Below the pieces are notes generated by a model. The model ran no database searches. It was not told where the DNA came from and saw nothing but the letters and a program-made list of their open reading frames with translations. The translations under genes were made by a program, and so were the position numbers. A DNA stretch of 64,000 nucleotides. Source: Macrostomum lignano (lineage: Eukaryota). The stretch covers positions 806,001 to 870,000 of the forward strand of contig NIVC01000114.1 in NCBI GenBank assembly GCA_002269645.1. The letters are read 5' to 3'. Positions 5,594 through 53,208 of the stretch are shown here, one piece after another (within the stretch, counting starts at the first letter, position 1; every line of letters begins with the position of its first letter).

Positions 5594-6806
5594 AGGTGAT
5601 GGACGGGATCTCTGAGAGGCTGTACGAGTTTTGTTAGGTGTCTTATTGTATGGAATGATAGTATTCGTTTGTTAGACAGACATCAAGATAAGATTTCGGG
5701 ATTTTTACGAGCTAAGTCAATTGTTAGCATTAATATTATTCTTTATAAATTTTCAGAAAACAAACTTTCTGTAAAAAAATCCCACATAAAAGCAGCCAAT
5801 ATACTTTTCAATTGAGTTGATCTGGTTCAGCCTAACTCAACAATTTAAAAAAATTATTCGGATAATAGTAGTTCTAAAACATTTTTTAGAGTTTCAAATT
5901 TTGATTTGCAGCAGGTCACCCACCTGTGTAGCCGGGAACGCAGCTGCAGTGATACCAGGGGCTCGCGTCTGTGTTGCTGCAGGTGCCTCCGTTTTGGCAG
6001 CGACTGCCTGAGTATGTAGCACAGAAGTCTATTCTATTGGTGCAATATGTACCAGTGTACGCGTCAGGGCACAGACACGGAGGAGTGCTTGACGTCACAC
6101 CACCCGGCCAGCAAATGCCGCCATTCTTGCAGTCGCCCTCGCTGCAGGCGGCTCGCCTCGTCCGCGCCAATTCGTTGGCGTCCTCGTCAAAACCTTCATA
6201 TTGAAAATCAGAGGAAAACTTATTAACTGTCATTTAAGCTACCTTAAAACCCCAACTCACCAGCGGATAAGTCTTCTGAAACCGAAGCACACGAAGCTCG
6301 ATGCCAAGCCAGCGTCAGAACTAGAATTAGTGTCGGCAGTCGAATTTCGGACGACATTCCGGACGAGCTCAGAGCCGAGGCTTATCTAGTTTGAAACTCG
6401 CACAAGTTTGAGCAGCTGAAAATCAAATTGAATCAAATTTGAATCAATTGAAATAGAAGGAATTAGTATAGCTGTGCTGAATATGCTACTTATGAGATAA
6501 TTAATATTGAAATAAGAATCAGATTTGCCATACTGGTTAATAAAAAATAAAGTAATTAAAATCAGTCGCAGGTATATTTTCATTTCAAGCAGCTGGCTGA
6601 GGCTCAGGCAAAACAACTTTTTCGACTCTAAAAAGCACTGAATTATTTTGTGACTGCTGAAAAATGCACATTGAAAATGCATTGAATTTCGCTATTTAAA
6701 ACCGGCTCGGCGGTTTTAAACTGAAAATTTTCAATTTTAAGGTCGATCATATTTTTAGACAATTTTGAACTTAGGCTACTACTTATAAAGATTTTCAGTA
6801 GTCAAG

Positions 6807-18600: not shown

Positions 18601-21600
18601 AATCACAGACGATGAGGCACTGGAGAACAGCAGCACGAGACTGGAGTCGTGAGCGCCGACTCGGATGTCTCCCCAGTGAGACGAGAGCCGGACCAGATCA
18701 AAGTGGGCAAGACTCGTGCGGAACGACAGCTCGAAGGTGCAGTCAGCTGTTTTGCTGGAATTGGTGTTGTCCAGCAAGACGCTGAAGGCCGTGCTTCCGC
18801 TGAATGACGCCAGAGTGGTCTCGTTGCACTGCGGTCCAGACCAGCCAGGCTTGCAGGTGCAGCGATAGCCGTGAGCAGGTGACGGCAGCTCGCGAAGAAG
18901 CAGCGCCTCGCACTTCTCATTCATTTGGCACGGGCTGGAGTCGCAGCCAGTCAGTCTGACGCTGCAGTTTTTGCCTCCGAACTCAGCGGGGCAGCCGGTG
19001 CAGGCATAATCCGCTACCAGGTCCTTGCAGACGGCTCCGTTCTGACACGGCTGTCCGAACCGCTCGCACTCGTTGATGTCGATTGAGCAGGTGGGGCCCT
19101 CGTAGCCGGGCAGGCAGTGGCAGGTGAATGAGGCCAGGCCGTCCGTGCAGCTCGACGCGTGAGCGCACACGCTACGGTTGGTGGCCAGATCCAGACAGTC
19201 GTTCGGGTTGATCTTACATGTGTCTCCGTAGATGCCTTTGCGTTGCAGTTAAATAAAGGAATAATTGCTATAGATTAGAATCATTACAGTCAATACAGTC
19301 AATGCACAGGATCTCCTCACCTCTCGGGCAGAGGCAGACGAACCCGGCAGCCAGCGCATAGCTGAAGCTGTCATTGAAAGGCGAAGGCAGTGATGAGTTT
19401 CCATACAGAGCCTGGTTGCTGCGCTCCAGACAGGCGCCACCGAACTGGCACGGATTCGGCGAGCAGTCCGGCACGTCATGGGAGCAGGTCTTTCCCGAGT
19501 AGCCGCTGAAGCAGCTGCAGCTGAAGTCTCTGAGCCCGTCAGTGCAGGTGGCGTTGTGGCTGCACGGGTTGCTGGCGCAGTCGTCAATGCGGCTCTGGCA
19601 GTTCGATCCGTTGAAGTCGGTTGCAGAGCAGTCGCAGGTGAAGCCCCTGACACCGTCGATGCACCTGCCGCCGTGCTGGCACGGGCTCGATGCGCAGTCA
19701 TCGATCTTGGAGCTGCAGGTGTCGTCTTGGAAGTCGACGCGAGAGCAGTCGCAGGTGAACCTGCATTTTTTTCAACATTTTAATGTGAGGGAATACAAAA
19801 CGTGCACAGGAAAATAAAACAAATTTTTGAACTTAAAAGACTGCTTGGTTCGGGATGAATCATCAACGAGGGAAAATAATAAGTATTAGATTTTTTTCGA
19901 ATTTTGACACATTTCTTCCTCTACTAGAAGAGAATTAGCAAGTATGACTGCTAATCAGAAGAAAATAACGCTGTCAGAATATCTGATGGTTGGATTATTA
20001 TTTATCTGACCATTAAATCTTTCAGTTTTCAGTAGAAGTGCAGGAATTTTTTACTTTAGTAGCATGCATTTTCGGGAGGGTAGCAGATATTGTCTACCTC
20101 AGGGACAGGGTTATATAAGTATTTTTACTTTTACACATGATTTTAAGTACCCTCTTTAATTTTAACTTTTTAATCTTGGAAACATTTTGCTTCCAGCGAT
20201 AAATAAACAAAAAGAAAGCTCTTTTTCTGATCAAGGGCCTGAAGGAAAGAGAAGCCGAGCTCAAAGCAGAATTTTCACTGCAAAGCCCAGATACTAGAAT
20301 AAGTAGATGGGCCACTCAGGCGTATATACTTAGTAAAACAGCCTTCTACTTTCAGTTCAGTAGCAAAGAAGAATGCAAGAGTGCATAAGCAATTTTTTTT
20401 AAATAAAGGTAGCTTAAATGACTTTGATAAGCTTAGAAGCCCAAGCTTGGAGGTGTAAACAACTTGCTAATTGGTTCAGCAATAATGTACATAGCCGTTC
20501 CACTGTAATTTACATGGCAGCTATAGGCTGGAATTCTGAGAAAGGCAATTAAAATTGGGGCGGGGCAGGGGGTTAAAGCTGGTGGGTAAGAGCCAATAAA
20601 TGAGCCTTGGCTTTAAAAATACATTGCAATGCTTGTTTAACTTTCTACTGAACAGTAGCTTACACGCAAATGTGCAGAGTGGCTAATCTAGTTATTCTAG
20701 TATCAGATATCTGTGCTGCAAAGCGACGTCCGCAAGACAACGAAGGGATCAGACTCCCGGTGAATGGTAGGATTCGTTTGGCGAACGTATTTTTGAGTGA
20801 CAGAGGCCTCAGCTTCTAATGATCAGGCACTGGGGATGTACTTACGCTCGTAGAAATAGATTTTCCAGTAGTGACGCAAGAGTATAAAATTAAGCCAGTC
20901 TGTTGATGGGGGTAAAGCCTGTGAAGTTCTGAGTCGCTGCTGTTTGGTAACTTTATCTTCGGTACGAGCGTACGCACCAGCCCTGCGACTGCCCCACACC
21001 CCATCATACCGCTGTGATTGGCTGGCCAGCCCCAAGCTGTCTGCAACCAGCTGCCTGTAACCTCCTCTGACCTCCGATTGGCTATTGTTTTTTTCGCGTA
21101 AGTTTAAATTTGGCTTGAGCTCGTGGGTCTTGATTCCCTAGGGCTAAAATTCAGTGGACTCAAATATAAGGAGATGTGTGTGTGGGCAGCGGGCATTGGC
21201 TTTCGCTTCTAACCTGAAAATTAGCTCTCAATTTGCCCGTGTGTCCGCCTTTTTTATTTCGTGGGTGAACCTACATACTGTACGGGATAATCGTAAAGAC
21301 GGACTGATCACGTCTCTTCAAGCGATCCCACGTTCAGAATTCGAAATCAGTCTGACTAGGGTGACTCCATCTTTACCCTCTAGAATCCGCCCCTGGGTCT
21401 TTACCCTCTAGAATCCGCCCCATGGGTCTTTACCCTCTAGAATCCGCCCCTGGGTCTTAACTACATTAAAAAAAATGTACTCCCGTTGTTGGCCCACCAC
21501 CACCTTACTTTCCTTCGCTGCCAGTTTCCCTATATCTATTCTATTCGAAAGTTTAAACTAATGTGCTGACTATCTAGAGTTTGTAAACAGCCACTTACAC

Positions 21601-24600
21601 GATCAGTTCGTGTCTCATTACTAATTTGTCATTAAAGTTGGCAATTGAAGAAAGGAATTCCCCCATTTTTAGTACAAAAAACTTTTGTGGGAGAAACAAT
21701 GAAGTTACAATAAAGGTGCGGGCTGGATTATAATATTTAAAATTAAGGAAGTTCGCGGGCCGCATAGAAAGTCTTTGCAGGCCGGAGGTTGCCGACCCCT
21801 GGACTAGGCTGACTGACGCCATCAATTGCTCGTTGCTCTAAAGGTCTTGCAAAGAACTGGGAAGCATACGATCGATTAAACGGCCGTGTCACAACACTAG
21901 ATCTAGGCTTCGATCGCTCACAGTTCATGCGATATAATGAGTAATGACGGCTGCTCCAGCATGACGAGGCGTGATGGAGTGCTGTTAGCGCAGACCTGGC
22001 TCTTGTGGCAACACGCTCGAAAGCATCAACTAAAATGATAAATGCGACGGCTTCGAAAAAGGAAACCACAGCCAAAGCCCTGTTTCGAATCCAATATTCT
22101 GTACGGCTGCTCATATCCGCACTCTGGAGCCCGAGCCCAGGCCGAATGGGTCAAAGTTTTGATATTTGGCACAGTAATCAAAGATTGCCGTCAGGTCACC
22201 TTCAGCTTCTTCTGTCCCACAGGGGAGCTGCCCCCAAATGACCCGAACTCAAAAGAGTTGTCGATCAGTTGGAAGAGCCTCCACGTGGTACTTCTTACCT
22301 TCGGAGTTATTCTGTTCCGAATACAGGTGCGCCAGAACGCCATCCTACGTTCCCAATCGAGCCCTTTAGATTTTCTGTTGCGTTTCAAAAGTCATAATAT
22401 TTGAGGACCAGCTGCTCAGAATCAAAACATTTTGCATACAAGTTCATACGTGTATGCAGATGTCACCTACGTTGCTTCTTTTCCTGCCTTAATAAGTTGC
22501 TGACTGGCAAAAAGGCTAACTCAGCATGTCAAAAAGCTTTAAATCAGAATTATTCCACTGCCTTCAATATCTAAATCAGGGAGTCCGGAATACAGGGACT
22601 ACCCAAACACCGGGACGGGAAACTAAAATTTTTTAAGAGGCTGGCTGGCAATTATTTGCATTAGAGAGATGCTGTGTTACTTTGTTGTCTATGGTTATTT
22701 TCTACTGCTGATAAAAGACCAGCCTCGTAAAAAACTCCTAGTTTCCCGTCCCGGTGTTTGAGTAGTCCCTGCCGGAATACTACGGCATGCAGTGAACTCG
22801 ATGGTAAAACTATCAATATCAGGATTTGCACGTGCAAAACGCATCTGCAGCTTCCCAATGGCTCAAAGAACTCACGTGGAGTTTCCGTCGCTGCAGACGC
22901 CGCCGTTCTGACAGGGCCCTGACAGGCAGTAGTCAGTGTCCACTGAGCAGTTCCTGCCCTCCCAGCCTGTGAAGCAGCTGCAGCTGTAGTTTTTCACCAG
23001 GTCCGTGCACAGGCCGTTGGCGCAGGGCTTGCTGGCGCAGTCATCAATGTTGATTTGGCACCTGTCACCTGCGAATCCCGTGTCTGTGCAGTCGCAGGTG
23101 AATCTGAAGAGAGAATAAAGATGAGCTCTATTGTTACAGAAATGCTCAAAGTTTATCTATCGGCGGTTCCGGTAATTTTTAAGAACTGTTACAAACGACG
23201 AATGTAAGACTCTGAGTAAGGTTTTACAGTTTCAAAATCGTACTTAAACCGCAACTGAACCGAGACTCTCGCTTCAAGTCAAGTCAACAAGAACATCGGT
23301 TTAAGTAGCGACTACAGAAACAAAATTTAAAATAGAAACTGGACAGCCACCAGCTCTTCACTTTAGAAACGAAAGTGGAGGGTTGGCGTGTCAGGCCATG
23401 GCTGTGTTGTCAGACTTTACTACCGTCATGAACAAATCTCATTCTGCCTCTCCGGTGTTGAGAATGCGGAGCACTTCATCTGTGCGTGCCCGCCTCTACT
23501 CAGGACAGGCTCACCTACTCGGTTATTTTCGCCGTTTTCAGGCCCGAAAATTCCTGCCATATCTCCCGCTACCTGAGGGCTACCGGGCTCCAGGACTCCC
23601 CGGAGGAGGACCGCGCTGCGGACACCGGCACCACATGCCTCCCCGCTGCATCCGAATGCCCGAAGCCCCCCTGCAGCTGAGTCAAGTCAAGAAGGAGAAC
23701 TCACGTGCCGTTGCCATCAATGCACCTGCCGCCATTGAGGCAGGCGCCCGTTGGACAGTCGTTGTGGTTGATGTTGCAGTTCCTGCCCTCCCAGCCTGTG
23801 AAGCAGCTGCAGCTGTAGTCATTCACCAAGTCTGAGCACAGGCCGTTGGCGCAGGGCTTGCTGGCGCAGTCATCAATGTTGATCTCGCAGTTGGTGCCTG
23901 TGAAGTTAACAGGGAATTTCAAAAATAGCAAGAAATCATCTTCTGATGTCGCTCTGCTATCAAGCACAAATTTTGCAATAAGGATCAAATTTTAAGCAGA
24001 GAAATATAAAAATACACAAAATTTTGAAGATTTCTTATCGTCTTCCAGACAGTGCGGAACAGAAGGCGGAAACCTGAACAATGCCATTAAAAGCAGCCTT
24101 TGAATTGAATGCTTCTGGCAACCAGAGCACCGTGCGCTAAAAGTATGTCTATCATACATGCATAGGCGTGCTAAAGATGAATAGCATTGTCTCAAACTGT
24201 CAAAAATTCTGAATGGAGGCAGAGCGATCAGCATCGATTTCTGGCCTGAAACATAGTTCTTCCAAGGCTTGTGCCATGAACGGACAGAGCTATCGAAACG
24301 TGACGATAGCGGGTGGCGTTTCCGACTCTTATGTGGGCGATCCTTTATCTGAGGTGGGCGCTCCTTTATCTGAGGTGGGCGCTCCTGTCTCTGAGATGGG
24401 CGCTCCTGTCTCTGAGGTGGGCCCTCCGTTGTCTGAGGTGGGCGCTCCTGTCTCTGAGGTGGGCGCTCCTGTCTCTGAGGTGGGCGTCCCTGTCTCTGAG
24501 GTTGTCGCTCCTGTCTCTGAGGTGGGCACCCCTGTCTCTGAACTAAGCGCCCCTGTCTCTGAGGTGGGCGCCCCTGTCACTGAGGTGGCGCCCTAGTCCT

Positions 24601-25750
24601 AGCTACATGAAATTCCACGGTCGGTGGTTGCCATTTCCAAGAGGTAGCAAAAGTTGAGCCCTTGTCATTTCGCGAGACTGTTTAAATATTTCATTCGGTT
24701 TTTAAGGAGAAGATTTTTGTTACGGTGCAATTCTTTTCCGTCCCATGCCTAGCTCCGCCCTTTCTCTGCAGGTGTCTCTCTCTCTCCATTGAGTATTTTT
24801 AGCAATTCATTTGTTTGACTTGCATCTTTTCTGGCTGGGCATTTACCCCAAAATTAAACGAGCAAAACAGAAAATCAATATTTAATAATCGAAAAGATTT
24901 CTATCATCAACTCAATCTCGCAAGCAGTTACGCGTAGTTATACGGCGCTTCAATTTCAACTGGTTATGCCCCACCTGGTCACCCACCTGTGTAGCCGGGA
25001 ACGCAGCTGCAGTGATACCAGGGGCTCGTGTCTGTGTTGCTGCAGGTGCCTCCGTTCTGGCAGGGACTTGCTCTTGTAGCGCCACCGCCCGAAGTTGAAG
25101 AACAGAAGTCTTTTCTAACAGTGCAATCAGTACCACTGTACGCCTCAGGACACAGACACGGAGGAGTGCTTGACGTCACAGCGCCCGGCCAGCAAACCCC
25201 GCCATTTTTGCAGTCGCCCTCGCTGCAGGCGGCTCGCCTCGTCCGCGCCAATTCGTTGGCGTTTCTGTCAATCTCTGCAAAACATACAAGCATACAAACA
25301 ACTCATTTGTAGAATTTTTTAAAAATATAAATAAAGCATATATACTGATTAGTAAAAATAGCAAATATTTTCCATAGTGCAGTTCAAGGCCGAAAAAGTT
25401 AGCCTAAGACTCAATGACATACAGTAAGTTTTATTTTAACAAACTTATTCAATTCGGCGGCAAAAACAATACAAATAAAAACTAAAAAGCACTTCTAGGT
25501 ATTTGAATTGTCGCAAAGCATTTTTTTGTTGAGCTCATGAAAATTATCAACTGCATTACTTGATACCATGGCCTGAAACGTCACATCTGGCACAGCTAAT
25601 GCCTTTCACTTCTCTCAAGTTCGAATAGTTTTAGAAAACTGCCAGAGCGGACTCACCAGCTGGTCGTCTGTCATGCGAAACCGAAGCAGCCACAGCTTGG
25701 TGCACAAAAATGAGGATAACCAGCTGCTGTGGCCAACACCACGACATCAT
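15660..25750 (-). CDS. Gene B: long Crumbs-like receptor (SP, ~15 EGF, 2 LamG, TM, Tyr-containing tail), ~1225 aa
   Basis: Exons 25750-25657, 25274-24987, 23897-23705, 23103-22876, 19760-19321, 19235-17965, 17888-17359, 17287-17088, 17000-16864 (TM), 16762-16694, 16167-16096, 15996-15914, 15732-15660; all phase-compatible GT-AG. Crumbs-type insert CLERSNQALYG...FSYALAAGFVCLC. The last two exons are less certain. Confidence 0.8.
16352..16660 (+). mobile_element. tRNA-derived SINE with (ATT)n tail, in an intron of gene B
   Basis: GGGTTGTAGCCTAGGGTTAGAGCG...GGGTTCGATTCC head (A/B boxes), CACCCAGCTGTAAAATGGGTACC core, ATT tail; duplicate at 58975-59284. Confidence 0.85.
21369..21455 (+). repeat. 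28-bp unit x3 (TCTTTACCCTCTAGAATCCGCCCCTGGG)
   Basis: Three direct copies; the reverse complement contains CAGGGGCGGATTCTAG, resembling MITE termini. Confidence 0.85.
21745..21801 (-). mobile_element. Single terminus of a hAT-like MITE
   Basis: Reverse complement CAGGGGTCGGCAACCTCCGGCC...ATGCGGCCCGCG; the partner end was not found. Confidence 0.55.
22593..22771. mobile_element. hAT-type MITE (179 bp)
   Basis: TIRs of at least 33 bp (CAGGGACTACCCAAACACCGGGACGGGAAACTA, 1 mismatch); exact 8-bp TSD CCGGAATA (22585-22592, 22772-22779). Confidence 0.92.
23380..23690 (+). mobile_element. LINE 3' fragment (intron after the NGT exon, gene B)
   Basis: GHGC...FCLSGVENAEHFICACP motif and TCAAGTCAAG tail. 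Confidence 0.65.
24345..24595 (+). repeat. 21-bp minisatellite type B (GTCTCTGAGGTGGGCGCYCCT), intron 2 of gene B
   Basis: About 12 copies. Confidence 0.95.
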
Positions 25751-26423
25751 AATTGTATTTGATTAACTGTTTTAGTTTATTGCGAAGCTGGACCCAAGCT
25801 CGATTCGGAGTTTTATTGTTCGATATGTAGCTGAAACAAAGGTATGAGGTGGAATATTTATTTCGTAGAACAGCGCGTTTCTAACAACGAATAATGCAAG
25901 GCATGGAAAGCATTGCTTTTAAATCACAAATACTCCTAGCATTTTGAACAAAACAATGCGTTTCAGGCCTTTCTGTGTATAAATATTCCAAAAACGTTGG
26001 TCGATCTGGGCTTCTAAAGGTTACTGAGATGCTGAAATTCTATAAATTCAAACAAAACGTACAGATTTTAATATTCTGCCAACCAACATTTCTTAAAATT
26101 TGTAGAATTTTATTTTACAATGGAGCTAACAATGTCCCAGGAGCACAACAATCACTGATTACTTTTACGGCCATAAGTAAAAACACGAAGGAATCTGAAT
26201 AAAGACTGATTTATTGAATTAAAACTTTGATTTCGTGTACAAGAGTTTGTGCTTTTGATTGCTTTTGCTGCTCTTGAACCGTGAAAAAAATCATGACGCA
26301 AAATATTGTAAAAGTGAAAAATAACTGTAAAATTATCAAATAGTTCATAGTCAGAGTATCTTGGATAGAAAAATTGTCAGGGGTGAATCAGCGGAAATGA
26401 TTAAAAGTTCTTTAGGTATACAT

Positions 26424-27219
26424 TCTCATCCTTTTCCAGGTGTGGCTATGGAAAAGGAAGTCCAAGGATGCATTTCTCAGGCCGAGGCGAAGCCGAGGCC
26501 TTGAGAATATCATATCGAGAATATCATCCAAGAATATTTGGAAAAAGGAGGAGAAAATATTTAACCTACTGAAAGCAAAAGACGCATCAATTATCCAGTA
26601 CAGTTAGTCTGTGGCACAAGCTATGTGACTGACTGGCTAAAGTGCTGAGAACCCAACAGCAGTTCATCAATTTTTTTCGTCTCCTACATACATAACAGCT
26701 GTAACACTTTACAATGCAAGACGACTTAGATCTAGTGTTAGGATATTTTGAAAGTAAAGAATCCGCAGCAACGAATCCTGCTACGAGTTGTCACCCGTCG
26801 GCCGCCACAGCTTGGACGGTTTTGTTCGTGAATTAACGACTCCTCTAACTGGAGTGACTGAAAGGTAATCAGTCTCTATACAAGACTTGCGCAAGTACTC
26901 TACACCGTGCTGGCTTCGATAGAGAGGACATTGCTCGTGTTACAGGACACTCTTCGACAGCTATTGAGCGCTATATTCAGTTTCGCGTACAAGACCATGT
27001 TAAAGTATCGCATGCTCTTCTGGTGGTCAGTCATCAGTCATTTCTTACTATGTTAAACTTCCTGTTGTTGGATTTGTTAATTTACATTTGTTAAATGCAA
27101 CTGTAGCAGGACTGAGAACCATTTCTCAGGCCTCGTTTGGGGACTGAGAAATGGTTCTCAGTCCTCCTACTACCGATAAATTACCATAGAAGTTGTTGTT
27201 CCTCGGGAAAAGGATGAGA
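26424..27219 (+). mobile_element. Decayed Crypton-like tyrosine-recombinase element remnant
   Basis: ~26780-27020 translates, with a frameshift, to YELSPVGRHSLDGFVREL...NQSLYKTCASTLHRAGFDREDIARVTGHSSTAIERY (YR C-terminus, HxxR degenerate). 14-bp inverted repeats at 26424 and 27206, CCGAGGCGAAGCCGAGG at 26483, 27-bp-arm palindrome at 27103-27170. Confidence 0.65.
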
Positions 27220-28165
27220 CTGGGAAAGAGGCGCGAAATACACTTTCTGTAGGTTAAATTTACTTATTGGACATAAATACCGGCACACCGGATGGACCGA
27301 AATGTATCACAGCATAAAAATGATTCATAAAAACTGCAGCAATACAACTTGCTTAAAAGACATACAGGTATACTGTACTAAAAATAGTCTGAAGCAGGCT
27401 ATATTCATTTTTTAATAAATGGCATTGTTTGTTTTAATGCGAGTATATACGAGTATTTAGTAGTTCACATGCATCTGCTTCAAACGAGAACGCAGTATTA
27501 AAATCACCGTCGGTTTTTGATCCGAGGACCAAAATAATGCTCTAGAAAAGTCACTAAATTGAACTACCAACCAGATGTGACCACAGCAACTTGGGTATTG
27601 TAGAATAAACACATATCATCCAACCTATTTACAATACGCTCATAAACTTACGGAGCAATTTAAACATAGCACGGAAATAGTACACCTATAGAAGTTTCGT
27701 TGCCTTTATTTTAACCTGCGATGATCAATTGTACAAAAGACACAGCTGCTTGAACCATTTCAATATCCAAGATGGCTCATACAGACTCTACACTCCCGAA
27801 TAGCACACAGACATTCACATTCCACGGCTGTCAAAATATTATATCTATAATTTTTCAATAGGCATAGCAGCATATCCAATGCTATAAATAACCTATGAAG
27901 GATTTCTAAACCGAGCTACGCTTTTGTAAGAGCGGGACTAAAAAATTGATTTGGAAAAATTTTAAACTAAAAAAAGCAAACACGAACGCTTTAAAAGTGC
28001 AAAAAAGTAAAAAAATATTCGCAATATAAAAAATTATCAGCTGCTCAAAAAGGCCAGCACTGGAGTAAAAAGCGACAAAAACTGATCAAACTCACACGGA
28101 ATGTTTCAACGCAATGTTTTTAATAAATATGGGATGTCTTCCGCAGAAAAAAAACTGTTGCATTC

Positions 28166-31100
28166 TCACTGAGAGCCTTGATTAGCGTAAATGGCAGGTG
28201 CGAAATCCGAGTTCTCATTTGCGTATTCGCAACCTGCGGCTTCAGCAATGGAATCCATCTGGACTGGTGGAAGCGGCTGGTTCTGCCGATTCTTCTGAGA
28301 GGGGGGTGGTAAGTAAAAAGAGTTGGTGGAATTCATGTATGATATCCAGTCCTCATCATCAAAACTAACCATAAAAGGTCTTGAATAATTTCAGTTTTGA
28401 GTTAGAATTTTTAAGGTCTAGTTTTCTCGTTAATAATAATATGCCTTTTTCGTTTCAAAAGTTATAACAAATGTCAAGGGACGCGAATTGATATCTCACC
28501 ACTGAAGCTTTGCAGAGCTCTTCAGTAGCTGAGGCATACTGATGCGCTGAGTCAACATCCTGCACCTTGGCATTCTGTGTGGGCACCAATATTTTGTATA
28601 TTATTGAGAATTAAAACCCACATCTCAAAATGTATTTCGAAATTCCACAGCAAAGCTTACACGTAAAACTTCACCAGTTGCTGAAACTGTTGGTTCCGCA
28701 TACTTGGCTGGCTTGGTGCGCGATAAATAGCCCTGAACAATGGCAAAACGATTATTTCAGTTACGGTTAATGCGTCATTATCGCAAATAGCACAATAATA
28801 TAACAATCTCTGCACTTACAAAACGGATTAAAAGACCCACCACGGCGACAGCGAGCGCAGCTGTGAGGACGACAGTAAGTACACCCACAACTGCGCCTAC
28901 AACTACTGAAGAGCTTCGTGATTCTAAAAAAATATAGAACTCATATTCAGTAAAACACCTCTGTAGGGCGTAGGCCGTGCGCTGCACTCTCTGCCCCACA
29001 TTATTATTTATGACTCATTCTCTCGCCTAAACTTGTTTGTTAATTCTCGACCAATCGCGCATCGCTTCACCCCACCCCACAATATTAACTAAAAGTATAT
29101 AGTAAGTAAACAGAGCCATACAGAGGCCACCTTTTTTCGGCACGCAAACCTAGACTTCACAACCTCACTCGAACATATAAAAAATAAACATACAAAAAAC
29201 GCTTTAAAGACGACAATAAAAAACGTCTCACCATAAGAATCAATACAGACGAATCCGGGAGCCAGATCATAGCTGAATGACCCATTGAAAGGCCAAGGCA
29301 GAAATCTCAACTTGTAGTTCGCATGGTCGCTTCTCTCCAAACAGACTTCACCGCTCTTGCACGGATTCGGGCTGCAGTCGGGATGATCAACCGAGCAGTT
29401 CACGCCCGAGTAGCCATTGTGGCATTTGCACCTGCGGAGTTGCCATAGACAATATGCACTACGGAACATGGCAGCAATCTGAATCACAAAAACTGCTCAC
29501 TCATAGGAATTGTAGAAAACGTCCATGCATGTAGCTCCGTTTCTGCAAGGTGAAAACGTTTCGCACACCTCAGAAACAACTCCCAGTCGTACACCAGACG
29601 AATCGCTGGCTGCAATGGCCTGAGGAAGGCTTGCCAGCAAGCTGGGAGAGACAGGACACAACATCAGCGGCTTCTCGCCGTTCAGTTTGGGGCCAGAAAT
29701 GGTGCCGCGGAAAGCTGTGGTGTTCGCTGGTAGAACTGAGGCCACTGCACTCGATAGGGTCGGCGCTGACCTCTTTGATCTACGGCTGCCGTGAGCTACA
29801 GGCAACAATGAGGAGTCTGGGGCTGCCCGAAGACCGCTGAAGCCGCCGATGATGAGCTGGCCTGACAGCTGCGGCAGCGGACTCGCACTGCTCAGCGGTG
29901 CCGACCTGACTGAAGATGACACTGACAGCGAAAGCGAGCGACCCGATATCGACACGGAGATCTTCACAGAGACGAAGCTGCCGGTGGCCACCGAGTCTGA
30001 GGACGTCAGCGCTGGGATGAGGGTGCTGTTGCTGTGCAGTAACTGGGCGGACAGACGGCCAGAGTGATCGATCTAAAAATATTTTAACAAAACTGACAAC
30101 ATCTGAAAAATCGTTAAGGGACATCATTAAGGACACTGACCGTAGCGAGCAGTCTCGGAGTGGTCGCCGAGTCGCTCGGGTCGCCCAGCAGCAGCAGAAA
30201 CGCTCCTCGAGACAAAGTCACCAGCCTCAGCTCAATCGTCCACGAGTCTCCGCCAGACACACTTGACGCATTTGGCAGAGAAGCGAAACTCGCAGACGAT
30301 ACAAGTCCGCTTATGCCGAACGAGTACAGCGGAAGCAGCACGGAGCAGTTTTTGCCTCCGAAGTCACCGGGGCAGCCGGTGCAGTCATAATCCGCTACCA
30401 GGTCCTTGCAGACGGCTCCGTTCTGACACGGCTGTCCGAACCGCTCGCACTCGTTTATGTCGAATGAGCAGGTCGGGCCCTCGTAGCCGGGCAGGCAGCC
30501 GCAGGTGAAGCTCCTGACACCGTCGGTGCACCTGCCGCCGTGCTGGCACGGGCTCGACGCGCAGTCATCGATCTTGGAGCTGCAGGTGACGCCTTGAAAA
30601 TCGACGCGAAGGCAGTCGCAGGTAAACCTGATTTTTGATTAGAAAAGGCACTTTGAAACCGTAATGCTTGCGCCGATGAAGTAAGAATCTAAAAAATTGC
30701 CTGTTTCATTGTTTGATTAACACCTGTTTTAACTTTGCTTACCTGTCACGGAAATATAGTTGGTTTTCAATCTCTCTCTTTCCTACGATTTTCCTAGATT
30801 TTCCTTACGGAATTTTACAATCGTTTATGTTTTAACGCATCAATGAAAAAGCCTCTGAGCTCTAATTTTAAAAATAAATTGCAAGAAGACTATGGGGCAC
30901 TGAGACTTCACAATTTTACAATCAAGACGGGAGAAAAGGATGGAGTCTACAGATTACAGAATTATCTAATCGGATAATTCTGTTCAGGAAAAATTTGCGT
31001 TAAAACGCCGCCTTTCGAAACCGTTCTCAAAGGAGCCCTTCAGATGTTTTTTTTTAATCCAACTCAGTCTCAAAAGAGTTTGCAAACAAGTTTATACCCA

Positions 31101-34100: not shown

Positions 34101-37100
34101 TGCCTCTGAGGTGGGCGCTCCTGTCTCTGGGGTGGGCGCCCCCGTCTCTGAGATTGGCGCCCCTGTCTCTGAGGTGGGCGCCCCTGTCTCTGAGGTGGAC
34201 GCCCCTGTCTCTGAGGTAGGCGCCCCTGTCTCTGAGGTGGGCGCCCCTGTCTCTGAGGTTGTCGCTCTTGTCTCTGAGGTGGGCGCCCCTGTCTCTGAGG
34301 TGGGCGCCCCTGTCTCTGAGGTAGGCGCCCCTGTCTCTGAGGTGGGCGCCCCTGTCTCTGAGGTAGGCGCCCCTGTCTCTGAGGTAGGCGCCCTCGTCTC
34401 TGAGGTTGTCGCTCCTGTCTCTGAGGTGGGCGCCCCTTCTTTGAGGTTGGCGCTCATGTCTGTGAGGTGGGCGTCCCTCTTTTTGAGGTGGGCGACCCTC
34501 TCTTTGAGGTGAGCGCCCCTTCTCTGAGGTTGGCGCTCATGTCTGTGAGGTTGGCGCTCCTGTCTCTGAGGTGGGCGCCCCTCTCTTTGAGGTGGGCGAC
34601 CCTCTCTTTGAGGTGAGCGCCCCTGTCTCTGAGGTTGTCGCTCCTGTCTCTGAGGTGGGCGCCCCTGTCTCTGAGGTGGGCGCCCTAGCTACATTAAATT
34701 CCGAAGCCGGTGTTGCCATTTCTAAGAGGTAACAAAAGTTGAGCCCTTGTCATTTAACGAGATATTTTAAATCTTTCCTTCAGTTTTTAGTGATAAAAAT
34801 TTTGGTAGGGCGCAACTTCTATCCACCCCGCCTCCATTCGCTGTCTTTCTGCAGCCACTGAGTATTTGTAGTAATTCATTAGTTTGGCTTACATCTTTTT
34901 TGGCTGTGCATTTAGCCAAAAATGTAAACAAACAAAAGCAGAAAAGCAAAAGTTAGTAATCAAATAGATTTCTATCATAAATTCAATCTTGCAAGCAATT
35001 CTAAGGCGTTTCAATTTCAACTGGCTTTGCCCCACCTGGTCACCCACCTGTGTAGCCGGGAACGCAGCTGCAGTGATACCAGGGGCTCGCGGTTGTGTTG
35101 CTGCAGGTGCCTCCGTTTTGGCAGGGACCGGTTGCTGTGCTGCCACCCGGAGTTGAAGCACAGAAGTTTATTCTAACAGTGCAATAAGAACCAGTGTACG
35201 CCTCAGGACACAGACACGGAGGAGTGCTTGACGTCACGGGACCCGGCCAGCAAATGCCGCCATTCTTGCAGTCGCCCTCGCTGCAGGCGGCTCGCCTCGT
35301 CCGAACCAACGCGTTGGCTTCCTCGTCTGTGTCTAAAAAGCGTTCTTGAGTTTAAAATCAGATTGTTAGGATAGTTTTGGGTTATTAAAACATAAACTGT
35401 GAGCTCGTCCTAATTCTTTCACTACTTTAGCAAAATAACTAATGATAGACGAAGCTCAGAGAGCTCTGTAAAGTCACCGTCATTTTGCTCAACCCTACCT
35501 TATAGACTTGGAGCTGTACTTCAACTAAAGCTACAATATGTTTTAGAATAAATAATGTTTTTATATAAATAAAAATACAGCATATCAACTGATATATGCT
35601 ATCATTTTTTCACAGTGTAGTTCAAAGCCGCAAAAGTTAAAAACTTAGCCTAAACTCTATGGGATACGGTAGATTTGATTTTAACAAACTTGGCTACAAT
35701 ACAAACACTTGAGCTTTCATGTATTCAGTGTTTAAGTTAGTTTTGTTTTGCTTAAAATATTAACGGGAAATGAATCGCAATGGATGACATGGTGGGGGAA
35801 AAAAGCCAAAAATTCTACATCACTAAAACCCTATCACATTTTCTGGGAATCTACGTTAATAGCACTCATTTTGGCACCAAAGGCGTTTCATTTTGGCGCT
35901 GTAGACACTCATTTTAGCAACGCAGGCACTCATTTTATCAACAAGGGCACTCATTTTAGCAACAAGGGCACTCATTTTAGCAACAAGGGCACTCATTTTA
36001 GCAATGCGGGCACTCATTTTAGCAATTCGGGCACTCATTTTAGCAACAAGGGCACTCATTTTAGCAACAACGGCACTCATTTTAGCAACAAGGGCACTCA
36101 TTTTAGCAACAAGGGCACTCATTTTAGCAACAAGGGCACTCATTTTAGCAACAACGGCACTCATTTTAGCAACAAGGGCACTCATTTTAGCAACAAGGGC
36201 ACTCATTTTAGCAACAAGGGCACTCATTTTAGCAACAAGGGCACTCATTTTAGCAACAAGGGCACTCATTTTAGCAACAAGGGCATTCATTTTAGCAACA
36301 AGGGCACTCATTTTAGCAACAACGGCACTCATTTTAGCAACAAGGGCACTCATTTTAGCAACAAGGGCACTCATTTTAGCAACGCAGGCACTCATTTTAT
36401 CAACAAGGGCACTCATTTTAGCAACAAGGGCACTCATTTTAGCAACAAGGGCACTCATTTTAGCAATGCGGGCACTCATTTTAGCAATTCGGGCACTCAT
36501 TTTAGCAACAAGGGCACTCATTTTAGCAACAACGGCACTCATTTTAGCAACAAGGGCACTCATTTTAGCAACAAGGGCACTCATTTTAGCAACAAGGGCA
36601 CTCATTTTAGCAACAAGGGCACTCATTTTAGCAACAAGGGCACTCATTTTAGCAACAAGGGCACTCATTTTAGCAACAAGGGCACTCATTTTAGCAACAA
36701 GGGCACTCATTTTAGCAACAAGGGCACTCATTTTAGCAACAAGGGCATTCATTTTAGCAACAAGGGCACTCATTTTAGCAACAAGGGCACTCATTTTAGC
36801 AACAAGGGCACTCATTTTAGCAACAAGGGCACTCATTTTAGCAACGCAGGCACTCATTTTAGCAACAAGGGCACTCATTTTAGCAACAAGGGCACTCATT
36901 TTAGCAACAAGGGCACTCATTTTAGCAACAACGGCACTCATTTTAGCAACAAGGGCACTCATTTTAGCAACAAGGGCACTCATTTTAGCAACAAGGGCAC
37001 TCATTTTAGCAACAAGGGCACTCATTTTAGCAACAAGGGCACTCATTTTAGCAACAAGGGCACTCATTTTAGCAACAAGGGCACTCATTTTAGCAACGCA

Positions 37101-38894: not shown

Positions 38895-41800
38895 TCACAT
38901 TCCACAGCTGTCAAAATATTGAATTAAATTTTTCATTTGGCAAGTCGAAAGAAAGTACGAGATTAATACGAGACTACGAAGAGCCGGAGCCTTGCAGACG
39001 GCTCCGTTCTGACACGGCTGTCCGAACCGCTCGCACTCGTTGATGTCGACTGAGCAGGTCAGGCCCTCGTAGCCGGGCAGGCAGTCGCAGGAAAAGCTCC
39101 TGACACCGTCGGTGCACCTGCCGCCGTGCTGGCACGGGCTCGATGCGCAGTCATCGATCTTGGAGCTGCAGGTGACGCCTTGGAAGTCGACACGGAAGCA
39201 GTCGCAGGTGAACCTGATTTAGAGTTGAAAAAGGCAGTTTGACACCGTAAATGTGTGTGATGATGAAGTAAGAATCATAAAGAATTGACTGTTCGTTTCA
39301 TTGCTTGATAAACACCTGTTTCAGCTTTGCGTAGCTGGCAAAGGAAGATATTTGGTCTTCAATGTCTCTTTAGTAGGATTTTCCTAAAAACTGCTTACGG
39401 AATTCTACAATTATTTATGTTACACGCACCACTGCGCAGGCATCTCTGAGGTTCAATATGAACCGAAACTTTTTTTCTAGAATAAAATATTACGAGGCAC
39501 CGAAACTTCACAGCTTTACAATCAAAGCTGTCTTTGTGAACCAAGATGGGAGAAAAGGACTAAGTCTAGAGAATTATCAAATCTCAAAATTTTGTTTGGG
39601 ATAAATGTCTGCTAAAACGTCATTTTCGGAAGTGTTCTCAACCGCAACGTTGAGAACGTTGTTAAGCATGTTAGGCAACGTTTCAAAAGTTTCCATTTTT
39701 AGAGTCGAATTCAATCTCAAAAAATTAGCAAACAAGTCTCGAAGTTACTTGAGCCGTTTCTGTTCCTGCCACTGTTTTATCTTGTAGTGTCGGACCAAAA
39801 CTTTAAACTGGCTTTGAACAGGGGCTTGGGGCATCCAGATAGGCTCGTAAGTTGGGAAGAAATCAAACTCGTGACGTTAACTATTTCTAAAAACTTAAGT
39901 TACATGTACTAGATGACAAGAAAGCTGTTAGGGCATGTGAGAAAAGTCTAAACTAAATTCATTCTATCGTTAATATTGTCTAAATCAAAGACTTCTGAAT
40001 CAGATGCAATTCAATTAAAAAAATGGCAGAAAATTCCAATCTGAGGCTTTGCGCATGCAAAAACACATCTGCAGCTACCTAATAGCTCAGAGCAACTCAC
40101 GTGGAGTTTCCGTCGCTGCAGACACCGCTGTTCTGACAGGGCCCTGACAGGCAGTAGTCAGTGTCCACTGAGCAGTTCCTGCCCTCCCAGCCTGTGAAGC
40201 AGCTGCAGCTGTAGTCATTCACCAAGTCTGAGCACACGGCGTTGGCGCAGGGCTTGCTGGCGCAGTCATCAATGTTGATCTCGCAGTCAGTGCCTGTGAA
40301 GTTAACAGAGAATTTCAAAAGTTTCAAGAAATCATCTTCTGCTTGCGCTCCGCTATTTAGCACAAATTTTGCAAAAAGGATCGAATTTCAAGCCGAGAAT
40401 TATAAAAATACACAAAATTTTGAAGATTTCTTATCGTCTTCCAGACAGTGCAGAACAGAAAACGGAAACCTGAACAATGCCATTAAAAGCAGCCTTTGAA
40501 TTGAATGCTTCTGGCAACCAGAGCACTGTGCACTAAAAGCATGTCTATCATACATGCATAGGCGTGCTAAAGATGAATAGCATTGTCTCAAACTGTCAAA
40601 AATTCTGACTGGTGGCAAAGCGATCAGCATCGATTTCTGGCCTGAAACATTTCTTCCAAGGCTTGTGCGATGAACGGAAAGAGCTATCGAAACGTGACGA
40701 TAGCGGAGTGGCGCCTCCGACTCTTAGGTGGGCGATCCTTTATCTGAGGTGGGCGCTCCTGTCTCTGAGATGGGCGCTCCCGTCTCTGAGGTGGGCGTCC
40801 CTGTCTCTGAGGTGGGCGCTCCTGTCTCTGAGGTGGGCGCTCCCGTCTCTGAGGTGGGCGTCCCTGTCACTGAGGTGGGCGTCCCTGTCTCTGAGGTGGG
40901 CGTCCCTGTCTCTGAGTTGGGCCCTCCTGTCGCTGAGGTGGGCGTCCCTGTCTCTGAGGTGGGCGCTCCTGTCTCTGAGGAGGGCGCCCCTGTCTCTGAG
41001 GTGGGCGTCCCTGTCACTGAGGTGGGCGTCCCTGCCTCTGAGGTGGCGCCCCTGCCTCTGAGGTGGGCGCTCCTGTCTCTGAGGTGGGCGTCCCTGTCTC
41101 TGAGGTGAGCGCCCCTGCCTCTGAGGTGAGCGCCCCTGTCTCTGAGGTGGGCGTTCCTGTCTCTGAGGTGAGCGCCCCTGCCTCTGAGGTGGCGCCCTAG
41201 TCCTAGCTACATGAAATTCCACGGTCGGTGGTTGCCATTTCCAAGAGGTAGCAAAAGTTGAGCCCTTGTTATTTCACGAGACTGTTTAAATATTTCATTC
41301 AGTTTTTAAGGAGAAGATTTTTGTTACGGTGCAATTCTTTTCCGTCCCATGCCTACCTCCGCCCTCTCTCTGCAGGTGTCTCTCTCTCTCCATTGAGTAT
41401 TTTTAGCAATTCATTTGTTTGACTTGCATCCTTTCTGGCTGGGCATTTACCCCAAAATTTAAACGAGCAAAACAGAAAATCAATGTTTAATAATCGAAAA
41501 TATTTCTATCATCAACTCAATCTCGCAAGCAGTTACGCGTAGTTATACGGCGCTTCATTTTCAACTGGTTTTGCCCCACCTGGTCACCCACCTGTGTAGC
41601 CGGGAACGCAGCTGCAGTGATACCAGGGGCTTGTGTCTGTGTTGCTGCAGGTGCCTCCGTTTTGGCAGGGATTGCCTGATGTTGTAGTACAGTAGTTTAT
41701 TCTATCAGTGCAATAAAAACCAGTGTACGCCTCAGTGCACAGACACGGAGGAGTGCTTGACGTCACAGCGCCCGGCCAGCAAACCCCGCCATTCTTGCAG

Positions 41801-42333
41801 TCGCCCTCGCTGCAGGCGGCTCGCCTCGTCCGCGCCAATTCGTTGGCGTTTCTGTCAATCTCTGCAAAACATACAAGCATACAAACAACTCATTTGTAGA
41901 ATTTTTAAAAAATATAAATAAAGCATATATTCTGATTAGTAAAAATAGCAATTATTTTCCATAGTGCAGTTCAAGGCCGAAAAAGTTAGCCTAAGACTCA
42001 ATGACATACAGTAAGTTTTATTTTAACAAACTTATTCAGTTTGGCGCCGAAAACAATACAAATAAAAGCTAAAACGCACTTCTAGGTATTTGAATTGTCG
42101 CAAAGCATTTTTCGTTGAGCTCATGAAAATTATCAACTACATTACTTGATACCATGGCCTGAAACGTCACATCTGGCACAGCTAATGCCTTTCACTTCTC
42201 TCAAGTTCGAATAGTTTTAGAAAACTGCCAGAGCGGACTCACCATCTGGTCGTCTGTCATGCGAAACCGAAGCAGCCACAGCTTGGTGCACAAAAACGAG
42301 CAAAACCAGCTGCTGTGGCCAACACCACGACAT
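38895..42333 (-). CDS. Gene D: truncated paralogue, predicted secreted EGF-only protein (~290 aa)
   Basis: Exons 42333-42243, 41861-41592, 40293-40101 (hybrid E3/E5), 39213-38895. Homology to C/E breaks at ~38990 (GAVCK|APALRSLVL...CGM*); LamG, TM and tail are deleted. Confidence 0.7.
40735..41200 (+). repeat. 21-bp minisatellite type B, intron 2 of gene D
   Basis: About 22 copies. Confidence 0.95.
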
Positions 42334-50700: not shown

Positions 50701-53208
50701 TGGATGCCCCTGTATCTGAGGTGGGCGCCCCTGTCTTTGAGGTAGGCGCTTTCGTCTCTGAGGTTGTCGCTCCTGTCTCTGAGGTTGTCGCTCCTGTCTC
50801 TGAGGTTGTCGCTCCTGTCTCTTAGATGGGCGAACCTGTCTCTGAGGTGAGCGCCCCTGTCTCTGAGGTGAGCGCCCCTGTCTCTGAGGTGAGCGCCCCT
50901 GTCTCTGGGGTGGGCGCCCATGTCTCTGAGGTGAGCGCCCCTGTCTCTGAGGTGGGCGCCCCTGTCTCTGAGATGGGCACCCCTGTCTCTGAGGTTGGCG
51001 CTCATGTCTGTGAGGTTGGCGCTCCTGTCTTTGAGGTTGGCGCCCCTCTTTTTGAGGTGAGCGCCCCTGTCTCTGAGGTGGGCGCCCCTGTCTCTTAGAT
51101 AGGCGAACCTGTCTCTGAGGTGGGCGCCCCTGTCTCTGAGGTGGGCGCCCCTGTCTCTGAGGTGGGCGCTTCTGTCTCTGGGTGGACGCCTCTGTCTCTG
51201 AGGTGAGCGCCCCTGTCTCTCGGGTGGGCGACCCTGTCTCTGGGGTGGGCGCCCTTGTCTCTGAGGTGGGCGCCCCTGTCTCTGAGGTTGGCGCTCCTGT
51301 CTTTGAGGTTGGCGCTCCTGTCTCTGAGGTGGGCGCCCCTGTCTCTCGGGTGGGCGCCCCTGTCTCTGAGGTGAGCGCCCCTCTTTTTGTGGTGGGCGAC
51401 CCTGTCTGAAGAAAGCGCCCCTGTTGTCGTGTCTTAGCAATAAGAAAGACTCTTTTCTATTTGAGAGAGCTCTTAGCTGAGCGTAGAATACGAGACTTCA
51501 ACTGGTAGCCAAACCGGCCTTTATATTATATTGAATATGACCGACGGCAACATGCCGCCTACATTAGGAGTACAGCGTGATCAAACTTCAAGCTTTAGCA
51601 TATAGAATAGAAAGATGCAACGTGCCGCGCGTGCACACTAAGTACATTGGGAATGAGTACACTAGATATTAAGTACGCAGATACGCAACGCGAGTCAGAG
51701 ATAGTTGATGAGCCCCGCCAAGCGGCGCCACACCTGTCTGTGAGGTTGGCGCCCCTGTCTCTGAGGTGGGCGCCCCTGTCTCTGAGGTGGGCGCCCCTGT
51801 CTTTGAGATCTGTGAGATGATGGATGGGTTCTGTGAGATGATGGATGGGTTCTGTGAGATGATGGATGGGATCTGTGAGATTGAGGATGGGATCTGTGAG
51901 ATGATGGATGGGATCTGTGAGACGATGGATAGGATTTGTGAGATGATAGATGGGTTCTGTGAGATGATGGATGGATTCTGTGAGATGGTGGATGGGATCT
52001 GCGAGATGATGGATGGGATCTGTGAGTTGCTGGATGGATTCTGTGAGATGATGGATGGGATTTGTGAGATGATGGATGGGTTCTGTGAGATGGTGGATGG
52101 GATCTGTGAGTTGCTGGATGGGATCTGTGAGTTGCTGGATGGGATCTGTGAGTTGCTGGATGGATTCTGTGAGATGATGGATGAATTCTGTAAGATGCTG
52201 GATGGGTTCTGTGAGATGCTGGATGGGATCTGTGAGATGATGGATGGGATCTGTGAGATGATGGATGGGATCTGTGAGATGGTGGATGGGTTCTGTGAGA
52301 TAATGGATGGGATCTGTGAGATGATGGATGGGATCTGTGAGATGAAGGATGGGATCTGTGAGATGAGGGATGGGTTCTGTGAGATGATGGATGGGATCTG
52401 TGAGATAATGGATGGGTTCTGTGAGATGATGGATGGGATCTGTGAAAGGCTGTACGAGTTTTGTTGGGTTTCTGATTGTATGGAATGATGGTATTCGTTT
52501 GTTAGATAGACATCGGGATAAGATTTCGGGGTTTTGAAGTCAATTGTTAGCTCTCCTACAGTCTTGATGTGATGTTGTTATATTATTCTTTATAAATTTC
52601 AGAAAACAAACTTTCTGCTAAAGAAACTTCCACATTAAAAACAGCCGATACACTGTCCAATTAAGTTGATCTGGTTTAGCCTAACTCAACAATTTTACAA
52701 ATTTATTTCGGATAATAGTAGTTCTAAAACATTTTTGAAGTTTCAACTTATGATTTGCAGCAAGGGTCACCCACCTGTGTAGCCGGGAACGCAGCTGCAG
52801 TGATACCAGGGGCTCGCGTCTGTGCTGCTGCAGGTGCCTCCGTTTTGGCAGGGACTGCCTGAGTATGTAGTACAGAAGTTTATTCTATTGGTGCAATAAG
52901 TACCAGTGTACGCACCAGTACACAGACACGGAGGAGTGCTTGACGTCACAGCACCCGGCCAGCAAATGCCGCCATTCTTGCAGTCGCCCTCGCTGCAGGC
53001 GGCTCGCCTCGTCCGCGCCAATTCGTTGGCGTCCTCGTCAGAACCTTCATATTGAAAAGCAGTGGAAAACTTATTAACAGTCATTTAAGCTACCTTAAAA
53101 CCCCAACTCACCTGCGGATAAGTGTTCTGAAACCGAAGCACACGAAGCTCGATGCCAAGCCAGCGTCAGAACTAGAATTAATGTCTGCAGTCGAATTTCG
53201 GACGACAT
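44745..53208 (-). CDS. Gene E: short Crumbs-like receptor with A-type head, ~892 aa
   Basis: Exons 53208-53112, 53044-52775, 49918-49726, 49058-48831, 48196-47969, 47052-46566, 46492-45921, 45851-45652, 45551-45421 (TM), 45333-45262, 45174-45100, 44870-44745; total 2679 nt. Confidence 0.88.
48480..48815 (+). mobile_element. LINE 3' fragment (intron, gene E)
   Basis: Duplicate of 31970-32310. Confidence 0.65.
49310..49712 (+). mobile_element. LINE 3' fragment (intron, gene E)
   Basis: SHGCLVRHRCLQENPFCLYGVENAEHFICECPAF; duplicate of 32810-33205. Confidence 0.65.
50485..51805 (+). repeat. 21-bp minisatellite type B, intron 2 of gene E (interrupted by a 308-bp insert)
   Basis: About 45 copies in two blocks; runs directly into type A repeats. 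Confidence 0.95.
51425..51732. mobile_element. Small solo-LTR-like insert (308 bp)
   Basis: TGTCG...GCCACA (TG..CA) termini; exact 5-bp TSD CCTGT (51420-51424, 51733-51737). Confidence 0.75.
51805..52447 (+). repeat. 21-bp minisatellite type A, intron 2 of gene E
   Basis: About 30 copies of GATGGGATCTGTGAGATGATG and variants. Confidence 0.95.

Follow-up and report, generated by a model that had tools for sequence, protein, structure and literature searches.

A hypervariable junction between two EGF domains, set within conserved exons of a tandemly duplicated EGF/laminin-G family in the flatworm Macrostomum lignano

Background

The textbook case of a variable segment that is kept distinct within a multigene family homogenised by gene conversion is that of the peptide-binding exons of the major histocompatibility complex (MHC), as set against the introns of these genes, whereas programmed diversification from donor cassettes is exemplified by pseudo-V conversion of chicken immunoglobulin genes and by vlsE of Borrelia. 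As to the proteins, Crumbs is defined by a cytoplasmic tail that ends in the PDZ-binding motif ERLI, and where one EGF domain follows another, the C5-C6 hairpin of the first, the linker, and the C1-C2 loop of the second lie next to one another. Here we consider a stretch of 64,000 nucleotides (nt), hereinafter the window (positions 806,001 to 870,000 of contig NIVC01000114.1, assembly GCA_002269645.1), from Macrostomum lignano, a free-living flatworm and recent hidden polyploid (PMC10733133, PMC5704211). The window contains five copies of the N-terminal part ("head") of an EGF/laminin-G membrane protein, and a patch of 23-29 codons in the second exon of these heads differs strongly between copies the flanks of which are nearly identical.

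Each head consists of exon 1, which encodes a signal peptide, and exon 2; all five lie on the minus strand, in the order E, D (truncated), C, B, A, as mapped by tblastn with P0034, a full-length relative of 830 amino acids encoded on the same contig ~100 kb away. An exhaustive profile search yielded four M. lignano proteins with the same N-terminal module (P0034, P0035, P0037, and P0038), and two fetched loci added three DNA copies of exon 2 (F, G, and H, the last being that of P0034). The family comparison thus comprises 11 members, eight as DNA and three as protein only, with all DNA coming from one inbred-line assembly.

A variable patch between conserved flanks

The contrast is striking in the case of copies B and D. 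Over 3662 aligned bases, these two mismatch at 3.3% of the non-exon positions (3.2% in the 300 nt on either side), whereas in the patch 14 of the 69 aligned bases differ (20%) and there is, in addition, an 18-nt in-frame indel; the remainder of exon 2 shows 4 mismatches in 201 bases, and the exon core of D carries zero replacement changes relative to B. The patch is the most divergent 90-nt window of the whole 3.7-kb B-D alignment (binomial P = 5.7e-8). Between A and E, the background is 5.8% and the patch reaches 10% (P = 0.10), with the remaining exon (again 4/201) falling below the background (P = 0.0085). When the proteins of genes C and E are compared over 755 aligned residues, 14 of the 58 differences fall inside a single 29-residue window, the top window of the protein. 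Across the family, column entropy is 1.09 bits in the patch, as compared to 0.17 and 0.24 in the flanking mature parts, and the same stretch is variable in all 11 members.

Within the patch, both cysteines, the tyrosine, and the glycine are invariant throughout the family, and Thr51 and Arg53 vary once each; it is the interleaved residues that change. The 11 complete cysteines of exon 2 are likewise invariant in all members. The C1-C2 loop of EGF2 consists of three residues in G, seven in A, D, E, and F, and 12-13 in B, C, H, P0035, P0037, and P0038, and is rich in Ser, Thr, Gly, and Asn in every member; reading of the alignment made no tandem-duplication origin of the 18-nt insert evident. 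A second, much smaller variable spot is seen in the C3-C4 loop of the repeated EGF exons, which reads SDLVNDYS, SDLVKNYS, TDLLKNYS, or SDLATDYN among otherwise near-identical copies.

An initial annotation of this DNA, made from the letters alone, had already pointed to a hypervariable region here, and most of its description stands. The five exon-2 peptides are exactly as it wrote them; the patch does extend from the end of EGF1, where it takes in the last hairpin, through the linker to the first loop of EGF2; and B and D do differ in it, with cysteines kept, despite introns that are near-identical. The proposed sliding-window comparison places the peak on the patch both in the B-D alignment and in the C-E protein. 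The span given for the region, however, is the whole of exon 2 of B, within which the patch proper occupies 25063-25149. The suggested location at the membrane-distal tip fits the gene model, with its signal-peptide exon, a furin-type dibasic site immediately before EGF1, and, in P0034, a transmembrane helix far downstream. Every family member has this near-invariant site, RTRR or, in relatives, RARR or RSRR, directly before EGF1; therefore, the patch is predicted to lie 26-55 residues from the mature N-terminus.

By the spacing of the six cysteines and the CxC...Y/F-x-G-x2-C hairpin, EGF1 and EGF2 are a canonical tandem EGF pair, and the exon-2 profile matched Notch1 EGF4-7 (5fm9) in the PDB at E = 3e-8. 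Copy C matches the NCBI partial protein BOX15_Mlig019047g1 (P0179) exactly, and an AlphaFold2 model of the gene C N-terminus, built on a 35-row alignment headed by P0179, reached a mean predicted local distance difference test score (pLDDT) of 80.3, as compared to 39 for a five-sequence exon-2 alignment. The best Foldseek matches of this model were Notch EGF arrays (E = 1e-14), with a template-modelling score of up to 0.80 to EGF11-13 (4cue). The structure prediction that had been proposed for the loop resolved the patch only in part: the C5-C6 hairpin of EGF1 has a pLDDT of ~91, but residues 120-124 of the inserted EGF2 loop remain below 50, which suggests, within the limits of a model, that the inserted loop is flexible. 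Since hairpin, linker, and the following C1-C2 loop adjoin in EGF pairs, the patch should form one contiguous surface at the EGF1-EGF2 junction. The calcium-binding motif D/N-x-D/N-E/Q is not found before C1 of EGF2, where the linker reads T-x-R-I/K-N/D-F/Y; EGF3 and later domains keep such a motif, as NIDDC or NHNDC. EGF2 also keeps the O-fucose-type motif C2-x4-T-C3 (CQNGGTC), and N-x-S/T sequons occur in several of the long loops; the Notch-type O-glucose motif C1-x-S-x-P/A-C2 fits none of the loop lengths found here.

Substitution rates and base composition

Replacement (dN) and synonymous (dS) divergence was estimated by the Nei-Gojobori method for the eight DNA copies, a number that affords low power. 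In the patch, mean dN is 0.251 and dS is 0.390, with a ratio (omega) of 0.64; in the mature non-patch part, the respective values are 0.040, 0.097, and 0.41, so that replacement changes are six-fold and synonymous changes four-fold enriched in the patch. Pairwise omega in the patch ranges from 0.3 to 1.9 and, without the highly divergent H, scatters around 1 (0.43-1.94), whereas the difference between dN and dS yields a bootstrap Z of -1.3; thus, among these copies, omega is not significantly above 1. The full B-D tract (codons 41-72) contains, besides the 18-nt indel, 12 replacement differences, as compared to 1.5-2.2 expected at the intron rate (P ~1e-6), and 4 synonymous ones, as compared to 0.4-0.6 expected (P ~0.001-0.003). 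Given this synonymous excess and an omega of ~0.8, the tract is older or foreign DNA and not only a collection of selected replacements.

The GC content at third codon positions (GC3) is 0.17-0.43 in the patch but 0.64-0.80 in the core of exon 2, with values of ~0.8 for exon 3 and 0.714 for 2042 codons of the family; the flanking introns, with a GC content of 0.34-0.42, resemble the patch. After correction for amino-acid content, the patch of B has 10 of 29 third positions occupied by G or C where 19.8 are expected (P = 1e-4), and that of H has 5 of 29 where 20.2 are expected (P < 1e-5), whereas core GC3 agrees with the expectation in every copy. Core dS between A/E/F and G/H is only 0.03-0.12 while the upstream introns differ by ~20%, and it is 0.06-0.16 between intron types whose introns are wholly unalignable; in exon 3, dN among copies is 0-0.045 and dS is 0.05-0.2. 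Patch dS, in contrast, equals or exceeds intron divergence. Third positions are not reset by selection on replacements alone. On the simplest reading, the exons are kept GC-rich and alike by some force that does not act on the patch. Most plausibly, this force is GC-biased conversion between paralogues combined with purifying selection.

Mosaic patches and reshuffled genes

The 24 informative sites of exon 2 group B with D outside the patch, whereas those inside conflict both with this grouping and with each other. Altogether, 126 of the 276 pairs of informative sites are incompatible, and a permutation test of the pairwise homoplasy index type gives a modest signal (P = 0.024). The patch of D is a mosaic that starts like F, continues like C, and ends like E; its INYC is also found in P0038 and its NPC in P0035 and H, and B has CSSTS in common with P0038 and the long loop in common with C. 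Jointly with the synonymous excess in the B-D tract, these data support patchwork gene conversion, one of the two explanations offered in the initial annotation. A sensitive tblastn search of the window with each conserved half of the exon found only the five full exons and no silent donor cassettes.

Larger rearrangements are apparent as well. B and D belong to a duplicated unit of ~7.5 kb, the two copies of which are 89-95% identical; E is an A-type head on a C-type body; and, in C and F, one intron type gives way to another at the edges of exon 2 or close to them. This is a family of at least 11 members in which heads have been re-joined to different bodies. In gene D, exons 1 and 2 are intact, but exon 3 is chimeric, joining the first EGF of exon 3 to the second EGF of an exon-5-type exon, and the gene ends after one more partial EGF exon; between this exon and the region upstream of gene C, there are no laminin-G or transmembrane exons. 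Gene D could encode a truncated secreted protein or serve as an alternative head for gene C, or it may be a pseudogene.

Introns 1 and 2 of the heads contain seven 21-bp minisatellites (12-62 copies), the units of which belong to three unrelated families. In gene E, intron 2 holds an A-type and a B-type array in tandem, which marks this gene as a recombinant and suggests that the arrays are crossover sites. We had also considered that the minisatellite 3' of exon 2 could encode a mucin-like stalk (SETGAPT repeats), but this was ruled out and the array is intronic, since P0179 joins exon 2 straight to exon 3, the next EGF exon.

Explanations for the variable patch

The explanation that we favour, with a confidence only slightly better than even, is that the patch is a weakly constrained surface junction and loop, exempt from both homogenisation and purifying selection, which undergoes near-neutral drift and is reshuffled by short conversion tracts. 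Under this explanation, the rest of the family exons would be kept alike by purifying selection and, presumably, GC-biased conversion between paralogues, and the GC3 near 0.71 and the dS well under intron divergence outside the patch would be the result of this homogenisation. In the patch, only the scaffold residues (Cys, Tyr, Gly, and mostly Thr and Arg) would be held, the other positions and the loop length would drift approximately neutrally, and third codon positions would have relaxed to an intron-like base composition, while short pieces would be exchanged among paralogues via short conversion tracts. The B/D contrast would be so striking because the two copies lie in a ~7.5-kb unit of recent duplication (or long conversion), whereas a tract of 76-94 nt over the patch was either not co-converted or was overwritten from an unsampled paralogue. 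We infer, in addition, that a heterologous patch acts as a barrier to conversion and that its variation has no specific function.

Several points weigh against this explanation. Conversion as the presumed cause of the high GC3 and low dS of the core has an alternative, namely, selection on codon usage. No donor for the B or D tract is found among the eight DNA and three protein-only copies: every DNA copy shows at least 11 patch differences (11-17, except for H with 20-38), and the protein-only copies, while having motifs in common with the B and D patches, are not donors. If omega averages near 1 although clearly constrained scaffold codons are included, it must exceed 1 at some of the remaining codons. 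In the youngest copies, the trio A/E/F (upstream-intron tree length 0.06), the patch has 7 replacements where the intron rate predicts 3.2 (uncorrected P = 0.044), a hint of positive selection, and the replacement-to-synonymous counts are 5:0 for A-F, 4:1 for E-F, and 5:2 for A-E. Finally, a sample of eight DNA sequences from one inbred line includes neither population nor outgroup data.

The main competitor, which we consider doubtful, is diversifying selection, whereby the patch would be a recognition surface at the membrane-distal tip, and selection would favour paralogues with different patches and remove homogenising conversions. Besides the predominance of replacements in the youngest copies, it is favoured by the patch being the sole hotspot in ~755 residues, with the scaffold kept and interleaved surface positions varying, by its closeness to the predicted mature N-terminus, and by its diversity in all 11 members despite flanks that are kept alike. 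Yet omega, whether taken as the mean, without H (~1), or in the B-D tract, is never significantly above 1; the raised dS and intron-like GC3 point to a DNA-level regime beyond replacement selection alone; and a low-complexity S/T/G/N loop, which varies in length and is predicted to be flexible, makes up half of the patch. The diversifying selection put forward in the initial annotation is therefore not borne out by the omega values and is only weakly suggested, by the youngest copies (P ~0.04). In a more specific proposal, which we regard as unlikely, the patch would be a recognition code that is particular to each paralogue, located at the tip of a flatworm receptor family of recent expansion and kept distinct by diversifying selection against the conversion that homogenises all other exons. 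Such a code may serve, for example, partner, gamete, or self/non-self recognition in an outcrossing hermaphrodite, and a long exclusion from conversion would have produced the intron-like GC3 and the deep synonymous divergence as side effects.

It is improbable that a single conversion tract, brought into B or D from a distant paralogue after the duplication, is the whole story. Such an event would agree with the confinement of the B-D differences to 76-94 nt between clean flanks, with the joint excess of synonymous and replacement changes, and with the tract-like sharing of motifs with other copies. However, no close donor is among the sampled copies, in 11 of the differences between B and D one of the two stands alone among the five copies of the window, and the same stretch is variable in A/E/F, G, H, P0035, P0037, and P0038, which one event cannot explain. 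The initial annotation had named two findings that would speak against its inference: of these, dN/dS is indeed not elevated, while a single short tract, foreign or unconverted, could fit B versus D but is insufficient for the family, since all 11 known members differ in the patch.

More improbable still is a local mutational hotspot, i.e., targeted hypermutation or error-prone repair that raises the rate of substitutions and indels in the patch, even though dS is four times that of the core, third positions are AT-rich, and in-frame indels recur. In the A/E/F trio, where the core has 2 replacements as compared to 7.5 expected, the patch has 1.5 synonymous changes as compared to 0.9 expected; because this equals the intron rate, no hotspot is needed. 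The B-D spectrum, with 4 transitions and 10 transversions, is not deaminase-like and does not differ from that of the introns (Fisher P = 0.16), and no slippage-driving repeat or palindrome was seen on reading the patch alignment. An assembly artefact or decaying pseudogene copies can hardly be credited, although the neopolyploid genome of M. lignano is difficult to assemble (PMC10733133) and D is without most of the gene body, given that exons 1 and 2 have open frames and intact splice sites in all five copies (with a GTGAGT donor on each exon 1), the indels are in frame and the cysteines kept, copy C is an independently annotated NCBI protein, and the exon core of D is free of replacements.

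The gene family and its surroundings

The genes are a lineage-specific, tandemly duplicated family of EGF/laminin-G single-pass membrane proteins, not Crumbs (see below). In exon 2, the tail of the propeptide and the RTRR site are followed by EGF1 and most of EGF2; then come several exons with two EGFs apiece, a divergent laminin-G region, another EGF, and the transmembrane helix. Pfam searches of database relatives matched EGF (PF00008) and Laminin_G_2 (PF02210), with PF00008 at 1.4e-57 on P0034, and the combination of EGF, laminin-G, and a single transmembrane helix is present in P0034 and P0002, as judged by sequence and Pfam, with the exons in the window mapped by tblastn. A word-indexed protein database search with the exon-2 peptide of B gave no match; since the exhaustive profile search then found four family members, this miss reflects the sensitivity limit and not absence. 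A literature search found no paper that mentions the three locus tags and none on this EGF/laminin-G family. Exon 1 of A and E was at one point read as MKIYLRL..., which was dropped in favour of MSSEIRL..., the reading that matches P0034.

A segmental duplication of ~15 kb, 91-95% identical and broken by insertions, takes in the A and E heads and a long-type EGF/laminin-G gene body, hence the array runs past both ends of the window. A fetched locus of 25,060 bases from assembly Mlig_3_7 (NIVC01000114.1, 828484-853543) is 100% identical to positions 22484-47543 of the window. In the source annotation, a gene of 334 residues ranges over the whole of this 25-kb locus and beyond, joining exons of distant heads or bodies; this could reflect splicing between neighbouring units or mis-annotation. 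A 181-nt element is found three times, at 99% identity, in front of genes B, D, and C and at a distance of 0.5-0.9 kb from exon 1; the C copy is inverted, and the sequence that surrounds it is only ~75% alike. The element has no Rfam match and may represent either a small mobile element or a regulatory module shared by these genes; an Rfam scan around B gave only a chance sub-threshold match. Within a long intron of the large EGF/laminin-G gene, there are open frames for a SAP-domain protein (PF02037, 3e-9) and a tyrosine recombinase (PF00589, 2.8e-6), which look like a mobile element of the DIRS/Crypton type.

Table 1. Coordinates of the features discussed; positions are those of the window unless a fetched locus (L001, L002) is given
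Feature	Position	Strand	Remarks
Exon 2 of B	24987..25274	-	288 nt, AG acceptor, GT donor, phase 1/1; propeptide tail, RTRR, EGF1, most of EGF2
Variable patch in B	25063..25149	-	PEAYSGTDCTVRKDFCSSTSGGGATRASP; EGF1 C5-C6 hairpin, 6-residue linker, EGF2 C1-C2 loop
Full B-vs-D divergent tract	25057..25150	-	codons 41-72; D counterpart 41662-41737
RTRR site of B	25225-25236
Exon 2 of A	5924..6193	-	patch 6000-6068
Exon 2 of C	35048..35332	-	patch 35124-35207
Exon 2 of D	41592..41861	-	patch 41668-41736
Exon 2 of E	52775..53044	-	patch 52851-52919
Exon 2 of F	L002:21231-21500		A/E type
Exon 2 of G	L002:1318-1575
Exon 2 of H	L001:10186-10473		= P0034
Exon 1 of B	25657..25750	-	signal peptide MMSWCWPQQLVILIFVHQAVAAS..., GTGAGT donor, phase 1
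Exon 1 of other copies	A 6261-6357, C 37369-37465, D 42243-42333, E 53112-53208	-	C confirmed by P0179
Exon 3 of B (EGF3-4)	23704..23904	-	conserved comparator, GC3 ~0.8
Repeated EGF exons with second variable spot	23704-23904, 33217-33417, 32322-32549, 31551-31778, 49725-49925, 48830-49057, 47968-48195
21-bp minisatellite, intron 2 of B	24326..24588	.	homologous arrays 34000-34685, 40710-41197, 50492-51407
21-bp minisatellites, all seven	4327-4583, 24326-24588, 34000-34685, 35903-37195, 40710-41197, 50492-51407, 51807-52445
B-D duplicated unit (~7.5 kb)	24333-31885 and 40938-48302
Gene D	38991-42333	-	chimeric exon 3 at 40100-40300; partial EGF exon 38991-39212
Segmental duplication (~15 kb)	5594-21285 and 52424-64000
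25-kb locus of the 334-residue gene model	22484-47543		L003
181-nt element	26489-26670, 43094-43274, 38008-38188	+, +, inverted	upstream of B, D, C
SAP-domain and tyrosine recombinase frames	8909-10910	+

Implications and comparison with known systems

If the favoured explanation is true, the locus is a compact case of a short heterologous segment within an exon that escapes concerted evolution, with elevated dN and dS, changes of length that keep the frame, and a steep fall of GC3 all within the same 29 codons. Such a pattern can be mistaken for positive selection and is therefore a useful caution for genome scans. If, on the other hand, the diversity is maintained by selection, the patch would be a candidate for a recognition system, of which none is known in this group. 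The patch is a new instance of a known pattern, in a family for which our literature search found no paper.

With Crumbs, these proteins have in common the signal peptide, many EGFs, laminin-G domain(s) followed by an EGF, the transmembrane helix, and the short tail, and one distant database relative carries the name "protein crumbs". We do not use this name because the tails of relatives lack the ERLI ending, as read directly in P0034 (...PPCPQEVFF) and P0002 (...QKEECR); furthermore, Crumbs is one conserved gene, whereas here we deal with a recently expanded tandem family. Notch/Delta-type EGFs are similar in the six-cysteine pattern, the CxC-x3-Y-x-G-x2-C hairpin, the rod-like tandem array, and the C2-x4-T-C3 motif in EGF2, but the EGF1-EGF2 linker of the flatworm proteins (TxRI[ND]F) is without the calcium motif, their EGF2 C1-C2 loop has up to 13 S/T/G/N-rich residues, and no LNR, NOD, or ankyrin parts of Notch were found.

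As to the mode of variation, cassette-based diversification likewise involves short conversion tracts that make mosaics in a defined variable segment between conserved flanks; here, however, no array of silent partial cassettes is present: the window has five exon-2 copies and no more, and each comes with an intact signal-peptide exon of its own. The MHC genes differ in that their dN/dS exceeds 1 at contact residues and their allelic polymorphism is extreme, whereas omega in the flatworm patch is not above 1; with them, nevertheless, the flatworm family shares flanks that are closer to each other than the variable core, deeper lineages of that core, as reflected in the raised dS, and mosaic sharing of motifs among paralogues.

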